Shown here piece after piece: positions 45,624-49,814 of a stretch of 64,000 nucleotides of DNA (the first letter of the stretch is position 1; each line of letters opens with the position of its first letter). A program made the position numbers and the translations under genes. The stretch spans positions 186,001-250,000 of IMG/VR virus record IMGVR_UViG_3300046787_000408; one strand, written 5' to 3'. The notes under the pieces were generated by a model, which did no database searches, was not told the DNA's origin, and worked only from the letters and a program-made list of their open reading frames with translations.

Positions 45624-48600
45624 ATGAATACCGCTGAGTTAGATTCCTATAGCCTTGACGATGCCGTCAAGTTCAACCAAGACTTGAACCCCCGCCTGTG
45701 GCACAAACAGCGCATGCGACCTGAGGTGCGTGAAAAGCTGTTGGAGATTGCAGCAGACTTCAAACAAAGCCTGGGACTGTCAGACCTTGAAGTCAAAGAC
45801 ATCACAGTATCAGGGTCCAACGCAGGTTTTACCTATACTCCACACTCAGACATTGATCTGCATCTTGTGGTAGACATTCCCCAAGCAGACACTAGCGATG
45901 TTTATCGTGAACTGTTTGACGCCAAGAAATACCAATACAACGCTGAACACAATATCACCATTGGTGGATATGATGTAGAGTTGTATGTGGAAAATGCCAA
46001 TCAACCACCAGTTAGTCAAGGTATGTACAGCCTTGTAAAAGATGACTGGATCAACATTCCCAAGCGTAGACGCAGCACTGTAAACGACGATGCTGTGCGC
46101 AGCAAGTATGGGGATCTCAAGCACAGAATACAAACTGCTGTAGACAGCAAAGATCACGAACAGATTTCTGCTATGGCAGCAAAGATCAAAAAAATGCGCC
46201 AAACTGGCCTGGCTCGCAGTGGTGAGATGGGTCCTGAGAATTTGGCTTACAAGATGCTCCGAGCACAAGGCTACATCAAGAAACTGTACGATGCTAGAAC
46301 TGCTGCTCGCGATCTTGAACTCAGTTTGACTGAGCGCAAGAAAAAGAAAAAGCGAGTTCGCTACGGTTTCTGGAGTCCAGGTTTTGCATTTGGAGACGGC
46401 GACAGCGGAGATGGCGGAGGCGGTGGTGAAAGTATTCAAGAAGTATCAGTTACCCCAGACGGTGTTAGTCCCAGTACCAAGATGTTTTTGGAACAAGATT
46501 CTGCCAAAGATGTTGATGTTCTAAAAAGTTTTGCACGTTACGTAAGCGGTGAGCTAGGCCTTGCTAAAATACCCAAGATTATTATCAAGCGCAAGCCTGA
46601 GTGGTCTGAACAAAATGGCAGCTTTGGACAGTATGTGCCTGAGCTCAATCAACTCACACTGAGTCTGCATGGTCGTCACATTGTGGATGTGTTGCGTACC
46701 TTGGCTCATGAGCTTACACATGCGCATCAACAACAGACCACAGGTATTCCTGACAACGGCGGCGATACCGGCAGTGAATTTGAAAACGAAGCCAATGCTC
46801 GTGCAGGCGAATTCATGCGTCATTTTGCTGATACCCACCCTGAATACTTTGATTCACGAACACTAGGCGAAAGCTCAGGCTACATTCCTACTGCTGCTGA
46901 AAAGAACGATCCACGTTTTGTAATGGCACTGAGTCCCGACGTTCAGCCAGGGGCAACTGGCAAGAATGCCAACCGCATGAGCTTGAAAACTGATGCACAG
47001 GGCCGTCCACAGCAGGCTCGTACAAACGGGCTAGTAGAATCCATGTCTCGAGAATTTGCCAAATTCCAATCAAAAGAAGAACCCTGGGACAGAGATAGCT
47101 ACGAGCCGCCAGGCCCAGAGTTTGAACCACAGATGCCAGCGGGCACAACTGAGATTGACGTAAAAGATCTTACAGACTGGTACAGACTTGGCATGGATAT
47201 CAGCGACATGGATGATGCCAAACCTGAAGATTACAATCAAGGTCCTCCAGATACTGTGGTAACATTTGCCAGCGACGAACTAGAACAGACCTATCTAAAA
47301 CAAATGAAGAGACTGGGGCTAAAGACAAAAGATCTAGATCCTGATGTCAAGGGTGGCGTGGACGTATCCGACCAGCATCAGCCCAAAGAAGACTTGTTGG
47401 AAATCAAAATGACCGGCAAAAACCTGCGAGCCGAAGCTGCCAAGACAGGCGCACAAGCTGGTATGGAATTTGAAATGATTGTGCCCAACACCGAAACCGA
47501 TGTTGAACCAGAATACGAACCTGACATGGATCAGGATCAACGTACTAGAAGTTTCAGTGACATTCGCGACTTCTTTCATGATGGTGACTACAATGGACGT
47601 AGACAAGTAGATAACCTGATGGATGAGTTAATTGGTGAGTACGAAGAATGGAAGCAGGAACAAACTGCTGAGCAATGGGATCGTGACGGTGTAGATTACA
47701 TGCGTGACTTTATTGAAGTCAATGAGTTGTTTGATCGCGACGAAGCCATGCTTCAAGCTAGAGCTGATGTTGTTGCAGCCAATCCTGACCTGCCGCCAGA
47801 GTCAGAAGACTTCACACAATTACTCACTGCCAGACTTGATGAACTACAAGAACAGTTTGTGCTAGAATCGTTTGAAGCTGGTGGCCGTATCTACAATGAC
47901 GCATTTGAAACATTTGCAGAAGAACAAAACGAAGAATACGACGAACGCAGTTTCTTGGATGACCGATATACCTACATGAGTGACATTCAAAGCAACTTTG
48001 ATATCAGCTGGCCCTATTACATTGACATCAACGATGGCCAAGGTGGAGATATGGACATTGATCAAGTGGCAGATGAGTTCAGTTCTTACATGGGCAAGCC
48101 TGTTAATGCCAGTCGCCAGTATCATGGTGGTCGTCGTGAAGCAGGAACTTATGTTGTGGAACCTGATGGTAGTCTAGAAGGCGACAATCCTGGCGATGGT
48201 GGCTTGGAATTTGTTAGCCCGCCCATGCCTATAGATGAAATGATTTCAGACTTGAACAAGGTCAAGTCCTGGGCAGACAAGACTGGTTGCTACACCAACG
48301 ACTCAACTGGCTTGCATATCAACATTTCGGTGCCCGACTATTCAATTGACAAGCTGGACTATGTTAAACTGGCCATACTCATGGGCGACGAATACATTCT
48401 GGACTTGTTTGGCCGCTCGGGCAACACCTATGCTAAATCAGCCATGGGCAAGATCAAATCAGCGCTGAAGCAAAAGCCTGAAGCCGCTGCACAAATCATG
48501 GACTTGATGAAACAAGGTCTGGACGGTGCTGCAACCAAGGCCATACACACAGGTATCACAGACAAGTATACTTCAATCAACACCAAGACTGGCTACATTG

Positions 48601-49814
48601 AATTCCGTAGCCCTGGTGGCGACTGGCTGGACAGCAACTTTGCCAATATTGAAAACACCCTGTTGCGTTTTACTGTGGCCCTGAGTGCTGCTATCAACCC
48701 CGAAGCGTACCGCAAAGAATACTTGACCAAGCTGTACAAGTTGTTGTCTGAAGGCATGGCGGACAAGAGTGACGTAAACGTTATTCAGTTGTTCTCCAAC
48801 TATTCGGCTGGCGAACTAGACAAACCTGCCTTGATACGTCAAGTGCGTCAAAAGCAATTGGCTCGCAATGTTGCCAAGGGCAAAACCACTGGACCAATGT
48901 GGTGGGATGTTTCTAGACCAGGATACATGAGCAGCATCGAAGTTGTTGCTAACAGCAAAGAAGAAGCCATTGATGTTGCATTACAGCCAGGCAATTATCC
49001 AGACTGGGCAAGTGCTAGAAATACATTACAAGCTAAACCATTACGTCCATACGAGGCACCCAAGACAAAAGCTGCTGAACCTGCTGCGGACAGTCAAGGC
49101 AACTGGGGACTCTGGATGGCTTACAACAATCGCTTTATTAGACAACCAGGACAGATAGACTATAACGTTATACGTAGATTCCCTAGCCAAGCGGCTGCAA
49201 TGGCGTTCTTGGAGAGAACACGAGAAGAAAATCCCAACATGCGAACAGACGTTGAAGTTCGCGAGATTCCTGCAGACTACCAGTTAATTAGTACACCTGC
49301 GGGCAGACCAGCTACACCGCCTGTTAACCGCAATACGCTAATGCCAACCGGCCCTGGACCTTGGGAAGTGTTTAGAATAAGCGATGGGTCAAGTGTAGCA
49401 GAATTGGGACAGACCAACCGTATGGGTGCTGAAGTAGAAGCTCGTAGAGTAATTGATCAACGTCGAGAAGCTCCAGAACTGTATGGTGTGCGAACCATTA
49501 GTACTCCAGTTCCTGGATCTACAGTAGATCTGCAACGTCAACGAGCAGCACAACAAAATGACCAAGCACAAGGTGGCATCGTTGATGTAGCTGGCGAACA
49601 GCCAACAGCACCACGCACATTAACTACTCCAGGACAAGCACAACAACAGTGGACCGGTGAGTGGTTGGTGCTAGATCCCAACGGTCGTGAATTACATAGA
49701 TTCAGTGGCATTGGCAATGTACAAGCTGATGCCAATAGACACGCTGTTAACTGGTTACGAGCACATCCTGGCGCCATGCAAGCAGGTGTTACAGTGGTTC
49801 CGGAGATGGCATAA
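45624..49814 (+). CDS. polyvalent protein: Pol-beta nucleotidyltransferase + HExxH metallopeptidase + amidoligase-like + C-terminal modules
   Basis: GSNAGFTY..SDIDLH; LAHELTH..ENEANA; GMEFE/DGSL/GLEFVSP/TGLHINIS/IEFRSPGG. Confidence 0.8.
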   Translation: MNTAELDSYSLDDAVKFNQDLNPRLWHKQRMRPEVREKLLEIAADFKQSLGLSDLEVKDITVSGSNAGFTYTPHSDIDLHLVVDIPQADTSDVYRELFDAKKYQYNAEHNITIGGYDVELYVENANQPPVSQGMYSLVKDDWINIPKRRRSTVNDDAVRSKYGDLKHRIQTAVDSKDHEQISAMAAKIKKMRQTGLARSGEMGPENLAYKMLRAQGYIKKLYDARTAARDLELSLTERKKKKKRVRYGFWSPGFAFGDGDSGDGGGGGESIQEVSVTPDGVSPSTKMFLEQDSAKDVDVLKSFARYVSGELGLAKIPKIIIKRKPEWSEQNGSFGQYVPELNQLTLSLHGRHIVDVLRTLAHELTHAHQQQTTGIPDNGGDTGSEFENEANARAGEFMRHFADTHPEYFDSRTLGESSGYIPTAAEKNDPRFVMALSPDVQPGATGKNANRMSLKTDAQGRPQQARTNGLVESMSREFAKFQSKEEPWDRDSYEPPGPEFEPQMPAGTTEIDVKDLTDWYRLGMDISDMDDAKPEDYNQGPPDTVVTFASDELEQTYLKQMKRLGLKTKDLDPDVKGGVDVSDQHQPKEDLLEIKMTGKNLRAEAAKTGAQAGMEFEMIVPNTETDVEPEYEPDMDQDQRTRSFSDIRDFFHDGDYNGRRQVDNLMDELIGEYEEWKQEQTAEQWDRDGVDYMRDFIEVNELFDRDEAMLQARADVVAANPDLPPESEDFTQLLTARLDELQEQFVLESFEAGGRIYNDAFETFAEEQNEEYDERSFLDDRYTYMSDIQSNFDISWPYYIDINDGQGGDMDIDQVADEFSSYMGKPVNASRQYHGGRREAGTYVVEPDGSLEGDNPGDGGLEFVSPPMPIDEMISDLNKVKSWADKTGCYTNDSTGLHINISVPDYSIDKLDYVKLAILMGDEYILDLFGRSGNTYAKSAMGKIKSALKQKPEAAAQIMDLMKQGLDGAATKAIHTGITDKYTSINTKTGYIEFRSPGGDWLDSNFANIENTLLRFTVALSAAINPEAYRKEYLTKLYKLLSEGMADKSDVNVIQLFSNYSAGELDKPALIRQVRQKQLARNVAKGKTTGPMWWDVSRPGYMSSIEVVANSKEEAIDVALQPGNYPDWASARNTLQAKPLRPYEAPKTKAAEPAADSQGNWGLWMAYNNRFIRQPGQIDYNVIRRFPSQAAAMAFLERTREENPNMRTDVEVREIPADYQLISTPAGRPATPPVNRNTLMPTGPGPWEVFRISDGSSVAELGQTNRMGAEVEARRVIDQRREAPELYGVRTISTPVPGSTVDLQRQRAAQQNDQAQGGIVDVAGEQPTAPRTLTTPGQAQQQWTGEWLVLDPNGRELHRFSGIGNVQADANRHAVNWLRAHPGAMQAGVTVVPEMA

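Follow-up and report, generated by a model that had tools for sequence, protein, structure and literature searches.

A predicted multi-enzyme polyprotein of an uncultured jumbo phage, punctuated by conserved hydrophobic-x-Glu sites, as a candidate for head packaging and prohead-protease cleavage

Why would a phage join three unrelated enzymes in one polypeptide and separate them by short, conserved, glutamate-containing sites? This question is raised by an open reading frame (ORF) of 1396 amino acids (aa) in a window of 64,000 nucleotides, the whole stretch of DNA analysed here, which covers positions 186,001 to 250,000 of the 299,983-bp IMG/VR contig IMGVR_UViG_3300046787_000408 from an uncultured phage of ~300 kb. 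The ORF is intact, with 1396 uninterrupted codons, and its relatives align with it from residue 1 onward (coordinates of all features are collected in Table 1). Our analyses predict a nucleotidyltransferase (NTase), a minimal zincin metallopeptidase and a glutamine synthetase (GS)-like amidoligase, followed by small modules, and we consider it reasonably likely that the product is a head-packaged polyprotein of a T4-related jumbo phage, which the prohead protease cuts into ejected enzymes. The assignment of the phage follows its T4-type clamp loader, which among cultured phages is closest to that of the Pseudomonas jumbo phage PA5oct group (52% at the amino acid level), then to those of Atu_ph07 and SCTP-2, and which by sequence places the phage with the T4-related jumbo myoviruses.

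The polyprotein belongs to a very large metagenomic family. Of 8000 candidates scored in a word-indexed search, 1700 were significant relatives, on contigs of up to 364 kb, and phmmer with aa 1-1200 against 1.84 billion 50%-identity cluster representatives returned 7353 sequences at E<=1e-3, of which 2070 also passed E<=1e-30. IMG/VR contains 401 family loci, on contigs of up to 524 kb. Deposited phage genomes hold only separate pieces of the family, annotated as hypothetical proteins: tblastn against phage records matched separate domains only, with no record covering at least 80% of the protein, and megablast against 50,697 phage records gave no DNA-level match. BFVD lists only the automatically named 'Amidoligase enzyme [uncultured Caudovirales phage]', and a literature search found no paper describing the family or its architecture.

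Conservation figures given below refer to family alignments of 111 sequences (110 relatives for E593). Structures of aa 1-590 and aa 590-1396 were predicted separately with AlphaFold (AF2), each with a 111-sequence family alignment, and these multi-domain models were used for searches with Foldseek and VIA-align, in which the small modules were barely tested. The first model has a mean predicted local distance difference test score (pLDDT) of 74, with confident parts at aa 10-240, 290-411 and 500-572 and values <50 at aa 241-291, 412-419, 463-469, 484-498 and 575-590. In the second (mean pLDDT 86.6), long helices interrupt a large alpha/beta domain, and four small modules come after it. Predicted template modelling scores (pTM) of 0.39 and 0.49 mean that the relative placement of the domains is of low confidence in both models. 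Against the PDB, the NTase, N-half and C-half alignments yielded nothing usable in either sequence or profile searches, the best match being 2rff at E 0.1, which was also the only match of the NTase profile.

The N-terminal module (aa 10-240) is predicted to adopt a Pol-beta/ANT-type nucleotidyltransferase fold. Its motif residues S63-G64-S65, D76-I-D78 and E119 are all invariant, and most of the model lies at pLDDT 80-95. Foldseek retrieved AAD(9) (6xz0, E 1.7e-3, probability 0.97), followed by AadA, ANT(4'), LinB, CdnE/CdnD and MNT, and VIA-align superposed aa 12-142 on the minimal NTase 2rff with a Z score of 7.2; these fold scores are modest, the query being a 590-aa multi-domain model. 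At the sequence level, aa 16-226 match phrog_36119 (PHROGs, E 2e-38), and the Pfam family NTP_transf_2 stayed under its gathering score of 21, with 17.3 bits for the whole protein and 20.3 bits for the isolated domain. Lone NTases of ~230 aa occur in the Maribacter phages Molly and Colly and in Synechococcus myophages.

A minimal HExxH+E zincin fold is predicted for aa 292-411, with pLDDT of about 90-96. The HELTH motif begins at nt 46707; H362, E363 and H366 are invariant, and E387, 21 residues past H366, is found in at least 90% of relatives. With VIA-align, aa 286-411 matched Wss1 (5xbn, Z 9.2 over 105 aa, root-mean-square deviation 3.8), AQ_1354 (Z 9.1) and SPRTN (6mdx, Z 8.7). Further structural matches were lugdulysin, abylysin (also in Foldseek, probability 0.99), selecase, BepA, PprI and anthrax LF, while Pfam gave weak metallopeptidase matches only for the HExxH region. 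As a lone protein of 124 aa, the zincin is encoded by Synechococcus phage B23 (gp332), and matches to the same domain were also found in phages B3 and S-SRM01.

The third enzyme (aa 594-1084) is predicted to be a GS-like amidoligase, that is, a carboxylate-amine ligase fold, with pLDDT mostly >90. Amidoligase_2 (PF12224) matched with 27.3 bits against a gathering score of 22 (E 4e-6), the relatives tested match the same family, and an amidoligase PHROG was also matched. The motifs GMEFE (E615, E617), VVEPDGSLE (E846, D848), GLEFVSP (E862), GLHIN (H898) and IEFRSPGG (E993, R995) lie within nt 47460-48608; all of these residues are invariant except R995, which is conserved in at least 90%. Foldseek retrieved glutamine synthetase (8fbp, probability 1.0) and YbdK (1r8g), and VIA-align placed GS highest (8oow, Z 11.2; another GS, 11.1; 2ojw, 10.9), ahead of YbdK-like 1tt4 (8.4), Dop (8.2), plant GCL (7.9) and PafA (7.7). 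The phage enzyme thus shares with the GS/GCS2 (YbdK)/PafA-Dop superfamily its fold (Z 7.7-11.2), its Pfam family and the ExE...E...E...H...ExR pattern expected of a two-metal/ATP site, a pattern that suggests residue-by-residue equivalence to the GS ligands. It differs from that superfamily in having no sequence-level match to any solved structure and in a helical insertion of ~130 aa that parts the first strand from the remainder; the region around this insertion (aa 620-842) matched no Pfam or PHROGs family. Lone amidoligases of ~500 aa are encoded by Atu_ph07 and RsoM2USA.

These predictions bear out a preliminary description of the ORF, made by a model from the sequence alone, which had read it as a polyvalent protein with a Pol-beta-type NTase, a metallopeptidase (HELTH plus a downstream Glu) and an amidoligase. 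The check it proposed, structure prediction, recovered all three folds (ANT, CD-NTase and MNT matches for the first, a zincin for the second, a GS-like fold with PF12224 above threshold for the third), and the catalytic residues are conserved in homologues. The Gly/Asp linker and about four small Trp-containing modules that it described are likewise present where it had placed them.

Outside the enzymes, the chain consists of linkers and small modules. The four C-terminal modules are each modelled at pLDDT of about 90, and the intervening linkers fall below 50. They have no detectable mutual sequence similarity (modules 1 and 3 are 30% identical over 30 aa), matched no Pfam family and gave only a weak match to phrog_15668 (E 0.003), and tblastn against deposited phages was empty; their copy number and order differ between relatives. 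No Pfam or PHROGs family was found for aa 412-592. In the conserved element at aa 417-472, which has low to moderate pLDDT, Y420, P422, P430, G443, G460 and P462 are kept in at least 90% of relatives. The small module at aa 500-572 has a weak ACT-like match (5uyy, Z 6.5 in VIA-align) and is missing from about a third of relatives.

Mapping 119 relatives with BLAST showed how this architecture varies. The segments aa 1-416 and 589-1147 are constant, aa 482-590 form an optional stretch, aa 573-589 hold a second insertion point, and the C-terminal modules vary in number. NTase and zincin nearly always occur together and the domain order is fixed. Split versions also exist, in which some proteins correspond to the N half alone and others to the amidoligase half alone.

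To locate the junctions, family alignments were scanned for Glu columns with L, I, V, M, F or A two residues earlier, outside the catalytic cores. All five hydrophobic-x-E sites listed in the preliminary description proved conserved at 89-100% (its E471 is E472), and all five lie in, or edge, low-confidence linkers. Furthermore, E416, E472 and E593 fall at or beside module boundaries that were drawn independently from insertions and deletions. In many relatives, modules of ~120 aa are inserted exactly at 414-416 and closed by x-x-E/[SA]SGYIP (a slash marks the presumed cut), so that the insert follows one such site and ends with another, as in ...TLEE/G...IAE/ASGYIP; a further bracketed example reads ...NVSE/AFDQPY...NVTE/...LLE/DEYISE/IRM. 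Among the modules inserted in relatives, with further L-x-E sites on either side, are a cytidine/dCMP deaminase, an M48 peptidase, DUF6934, DUF5661 and a GH19 muramidase-like domain at the C-terminus, and module gain, module loss and gene splitting coincide with [L/I/V]-x-E sites.

Some of these inserts carry an Ala-rich, hydrophobic, signal- or transmembrane-like segment directly past an L-x-E site, namely a Q-rich module, the M48 peptidase and the GH19 domain (past the E416 site in P0006-P0008, P0013 and P0063; at aa 615-633 in P0086; at aa about 1395-1425 in P0109). The M48 module of P0086 matches Pfam TAT_signal. Such segments could act as N-terminal signals only once cut.

The sites probably derive from leaders of free-standing genes. 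In relatives, free-standing amidoligases start with a leader of 8-18 aa, such as MRAKEFLKLFE/VRMNP, MRAQEFLKLLAEHRLFE/INMGS or MKYLELLERTLME/INMSP, and the terminal L-x-E of this leader is collinear with E593/IKM of the window. Among the best 80 IMG/VR loci, 45 have a fused gene and 29 a separate amidoligase gene; every one of these 29 genes has the leader and lacks an NTase motif within 7 kb upstream. In the protein set, 30 free-standing amidoligases have a leader that ends at the E593 position. The same holds for cultured phages: AUZ94978.1 of Atu_ph07 begins MRWQDISSKKLTE/LKMNSS and RsoM2USA_26 begins MKLIQKLSE/LKMDMS, and the lone zincin of the T4-like cyanophage B23 begins MNYKQFLRE/S. 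The form common to free-standing modules is M-[R/K]-x-x-[E/D]-[F/I/L]...L-x-E. Remnants of such leaders (...LRQEFALLE...) persist inside fused proteins in 67 of 268 collected family members (for example P0008, P0036 and P0086); in the window polyprotein, only bare L-x-E sites are left. Processing at the hydrophobic-x-E sites thus has strong comparative support, because the sites are conserved, lie in linkers, mark the points of insertion and splitting, and are collinear with free-standing leaders.

Leader-bearing genes also follow the polyprotein itself. Across all six frames of the window, the leader motif has three matches only, in the genes that start at 49814, 51293 and 51504. Across 78 related loci, 48 ORF starts are leader-like; 46 of these lie past the stop codon of the polyprotein in the same orientation, and 13 begin right at that codon. 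The first of the three genes encodes a DUF6934 protein with a ParB-like DGHHR motif (Pfam ParBc_2, E 0.0085), and in related contigs, too, this leader gene comes after the polyprotein. DUF6934 also occurs inside the polyprotein of relatives P0073 and P0008, between L-x-E sites, which indicates that the polyprotein and the leader-bearing genes share one module pool. The 66-aa product of the third gene aligns with C-terminal module 1 at the expected place, with an E value of 1.1 that is not significant.

Phage polyvalent proteins are known to include ParB-like nucleases, and the 68-aa product of the second gene is very basic, as T4 internal proteins are. Between the first and second genes, a 223-aa protein (50620-51291, +) has an N half that is very acidic and rich in L-x-E sites, and a DUF6321 domain at the C-terminus that is very basic; this protein, too, may be packed into the head and processed there, and a DUF6321 gene is also found near the polyprotein locus in contig L001. 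Elsewhere in the window, a 378-aa ORF (26792-27928, +) with no family match starts with MRANQFISN, leader-like without Glu sites.

In T4, the capsid targeting sequence (CTS) MKTYQEFIAE is removed by one cut, and any protein fused to it gets packaged (PMC8442874). Alt, an enzyme that T4 injects, is trimmed at ITE-6 and LTE-619 by the prohead protease gp21, and the related proteases of giant phages likewise cut after Glu (PMC5694885). On this precedent, the polyprotein would be a chain of independently folding modules on disordered linkers, each linker with an [L/I/V]-x-E site, and these sites would descend from the N-terminal leaders that the same modules carry as separate genes. The polyprotein would be incorporated into the prohead core, where a T4 gp21-type protease would cut after the Glu of each site and release a 26.5-kDa NTase, a 16-kDa zincin, small peptides and an amidoligase-plus-modules product of up to 90 kDa. 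The fragments would stay inside the capsid until they are injected along with the DNA, and each enzyme would then act on its own target by nucleoside monophosphate (NMP) transfer, proteolysis or ATP-dependent carboxylate-amine ligation.

Support for a virion location comes from Atu_ph07. In its virion proteome, 14 unique peptides cover 30.2% of gp196, which has a mass of 57.94 kDa and is listed as 'hypothetical protein' (PMC6102473, Supplementary Table S5). By gene order and size we identified gp196 as AUZ94978.1, the 500-aa amidoligase homologue, because gp195 is 993 bp, gp197 about 87 kDa and gp198 the 1755-bp portal gene. AUZ94978.1 and the window amidoligase share 30% identity over 259 aa (E 3e-29), with a collinear stretch that runs from LLEIKM to GMEFEM in the window and from LTELKM to GFEFEV in Atu_ph07. 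The free-standing enzymes gp196 and RsoM2USA_26, both 'hypothetical protein' in GenBank, start with M-[R/K]...L-[T/S]-E/LKM, and both phages encode gp21-type proteases: gp204 of Atu_ph07 is a T4 gp21 homologue (PMC6102473) and ORF379 of RsoM2USA is 38% identical to T4 gp21. Unlike the window polyprotein, the two proteins come without NTase, zincin or C-terminal modules. At the Atu_ph07 locus (154929-157431, L005), gp196 adjoins gp195, annotated as a T4-like (GC1542) nucleotidyltransferase, and lies two genes from the portal; gp195 has no tblastn match to the window NTase and is absent from the accessible portion of the virion-protein table.

The preliminary description had gone further and proposed an injected, protease-processed toolkit for covalent modification of host macromolecules. 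Its processing part is upheld by the comparative site evidence, and its virion delivery receives indirect support from the CTS-like downstream genes and from mass spectrometry of Atu_ph07. The modification of host macromolecules is still a guess, because the closest structural relatives of the NTase and the ligase include many small-molecule enzymes.

Several points weigh against head packaging. The virion evidence concerns a relative with 30% identity in the amidoligase only; for the polyprotein itself we infer packaging, cleavage, injection and substrates. Its N-terminus, MNTAELDSY, is not a CTS-like leader and has T at position -2, and the family consensus MNIxE amounts to a short, 5-aa I-x-E in 79% of relatives (compare ITE-6 of T4 Alt). 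The similarity of the leaders to the T4 CTS extends over 9-10 residues only. No gp21-type protease, major capsid protein or portal was detected in the window or the fetched loci, and a scan of IMG/VR that started from the RsoM2USA protease, a method of short reach, returned close RsoM2USA relatives only, none of them on a polyprotein contig. The immediate upstream genes are chaperone, radical-SAM and transferase-like genes, not head genes, and tblastn found no polyprotein homologue in PA5oct, although its clamp loader is the closest among cultured phages.

The lack of an adjacent head gene would also fit a polyprotein that stays in the cytoplasm, outside the virion, and is cut by its own zincin after synthesis or delivery. 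A zincin with intact HExxH+E does lie within the protein, and metallopeptidases (MPTases) are the commonest hub domain of polyvalent proteins, for which autoprocessing has been proposed (Iyer et al. 2017, PMC5512222). We nevertheless regard self-cleavage as unlikely: the amidoligases with L-x-E leaders have no NTase/zincin gene within 7 kb upstream in any of the 29 loci, the lone B23 zincin is itself leader-bearing and therefore looks like cargo, cutting after Glu in L/I-x-E is a habit of T4-type prohead serine proteases (PMC5694885), and an amidoligase homologue is present in Atu_ph07 virions.

Alternatively, the protein might remain uncut and work as a multi-enzyme of one pathway on a small molecule or the cell envelope, for example by NMP activation, amide ligation and trimming. 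The best structural matches, which are small-molecule enzymes (aminoglycoside NTases and CD-NTases; GS and gamma-glutamyl ligases), would suit such a role, as would the nearly constant pairing of NTase and zincin and the fixed domain order. This appears improbable to us, since every enzyme module also occurs alone in other phages, unrelated enzymes (deaminase, M48, GH19) are slotted into the junctions, long disordered linkers hold conserved cleavage-type sites, and the low pTM values reflect domains placed with low mutual confidence. It seems very improbable that the protein is mainly a structural core or 'inner body' component of a large head with enzyme folds as relics: giant phages do pack large internal protein masses (PMC5694885) and the protein is acidic (pI 4.8) with long helical segments, but the catalytic residues of three enzymes are invariant or at least 90% conserved in relatives taken from a family of thousands of clusters, which is unexpected in relics. 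All three alternatives are thus less well supported than a polyprotein that is packaged in the head and cut there.

The proposed head-packaged polyprotein resembles several known systems and differs from each in some respects. Polyvalent proteins of phages and conjugative elements (Iyer et al. 2017, PMC5512222) also join unrelated enzymes in one large polypeptide, among them Pol-beta NTases and zincin-like MPTases, have highly variable architectures and are predicted to be delivered with DNA. With three enzyme folds and at least six further modules, the window protein likewise combines several unrelated catalytic domains in one phage protein, the defining feature of that class. In contrast to those proteins, it includes an amidoligase (0 occurrences of the term in PMC5512222), its L-x-E junctions collinear with CTS-like leaders point to the prohead protease rather than to an MPTase, and its family resides in uncultured phages of 100-500 kb. 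The T4 internal proteins IPI-III and Alt share the MKTYQEFIAE-type leader ending in hydrophobic-x-E; the variable T4 cargoes have only this leader in common, Alt is an injected enzyme trimmed at two such sites, and three leader genes follow the window polyprotein. T4 cargoes are separate genes with one leader each, whereas here up to ten modules are joined in one ORF, the polyprotein N-terminus lacks a full leader, and the leader likeness is a short-motif resemblance. In giant phages of the phiKZ/SPN3US type, a gp21-related protease likewise cleaves many internal head proteins behind Glu, and these ejection (E) proteins enter the host (PMC5694885); those phages form a different group and use A/S/G-x-E motifs, and no homology to the E proteins was seen in the proteins studied here.

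If correct, the proposed packaging and cleavage would explain how huge phages pack and deliver several enzymes from one gene, and leader plus L-x-E would provide a simple sequence rule by which ejected effectors of uncultured T4-related jumbo phages could be recognised. The NTase, the minimal zincin and the amidoligase, with their intact active sites, would also become candidates for first-minute factors in host takeover or counter-defence, with targets that could be sought directly. The leader could be tried for loading foreign proteins into these heads, as the T4 CTS already is. We tentatively raise the possibility of a 'string of beads', in which any leader-bearing effector could be fused in frame, the prohead protease would unstring the chain in the head, and the GS-like amidoligase would, as soon as it is injected, covalently attach an amine or a peptide to some target in the host. 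Were this so, such injected amidoligase chemistry would be one not yet described for phages, and in some relatives M48 or GH19 beads with signal-like starts would be exportable to the periplasm only past the cut.

Table 1. Positions of the polyprotein, its modules and sites, and neighbouring genes in the window (nucleotide positions count from the first letter of the window).
Feature	Position	Strand	Remarks
Polyprotein ORF	45624..49814	+	1396 aa, 156 kDa, pI 4.8, ATG start
Nucleotidyltransferase module, aa 10-240 (predicted)	45651..46343	+	Pol-beta catalytic core plus C-terminal helical bundle
Site L-T-E237	46326..46334	+	97% of 111 relatives; end of NTase, Lys run after, pLDDT collapse from aa 241
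Disordered linker, aa 241-291 (Lys-rich, then Gly/Asp-rich at ~aa 254-268)	46344..46496	+	pLDDT <50; holds I-Q-E273
Site I-Q-E273	46434..46442	+	conserved 90%
Minimal zincin module, aa 292-411 (predicted)	46497..46856	+	H362-E363-x-x-H366 plus E387
Site L-G-E416	46863..46871	+	conserved 95%; SSGYIP after; chief insertion point of the family
Conserved element, aa 417-472 (SGYIPT...DPRF...PG.TG)	46872..47039	+	ends in site L-V-E472
Site L-V-E472	end of 46872..47039	+	conserved 89%
Small beta-alpha-beta-alpha-beta module, aa 500-572	47121..47339	+	pLDDT 74-83
Site L-L-E593	47394..47402	+	100% of 110 relatives; IKM after; start of amidoligase
GS-like amidoligase module, aa 594-1084 (predicted)	47403..48875	+	Pfam PF12224, GS-like fold
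Long-helix insertion in amidoligase, aa 659-790	47598..47993	+	AF2 model
Four beta-beta-alpha-beta modules, aa 1092-1142, 1161-1214, 1247-1291, 1343-1395	48897..49808	+	Trp-containing
Downstream gene, 269 aa, start MRAQEFVTE	49814..50623	+	ATG overlaps polyprotein stop; DUF6934 plus C-terminal DGHHR
Small gene, 68 aa, very basic, start MRASEFVTE	51293..51499	+	leader motif
Small gene, 66 aa, start MRAQEFIAE	51504..51704	+	leader motif
79-aa ORF, lipoprotein-type N-terminus (...LSGC)	51705-51944	-	directly past leader-gene array
Two large ORFs, 758 and 378 aa, likewise directly past the leader-gene array, signal-peptide-like N-termini	54343-56619, 56555-57691	-	no family match
DnaJ-like plus ClpB-like pair	38024-38794 and about 38.8-41.1 kb	+	4-7 kb upstream of polyprotein
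Cytidylyltransferase-like gene, two radical-SAM genes (phrog_14086), NAD synthetase	42765-43562, 43555-44691, 62431-63519, 3845-4672	+	auxiliary metabolic/modification genes; not conserved beside the polyprotein in relatives

Beyond the polyprotein and its leader-bearing neighbours, the window encodes the clamp loader, tail-fibre-like genes, a Laminin_G virion protein, a GH19 endolysin, DnaJ and ClpB homologues, radical-SAM enzymes and NAD synthetase. Sigma-70-like promoters were no commoner than in shuffled sequence, and the T4 late-promoter motif TATAAATA occurred once, as chance predicts; terminator-like sites were commoner than in shuffles (21 vs 11.8 expected) and mark no operon boundary. 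A DNA-hypermodification or metabolic operon was considered and set aside: the radical-SAM and cytidylyltransferase-like neighbours are not conserved beside the gene in related contigs, unlike the DnaJ-ClpB pair and the ~300-aa gene directly upstream. The latter matches phrog_1574, with a faint Pfam match to the glycosyltransferase family Anp1, and is kept in related contigs. The DnaJ-ClpB pair is also found 4-7 kb upstream in related contigs of 209 kb and 335 kb (L001, 2462-5555, and L003, 2329-5468).

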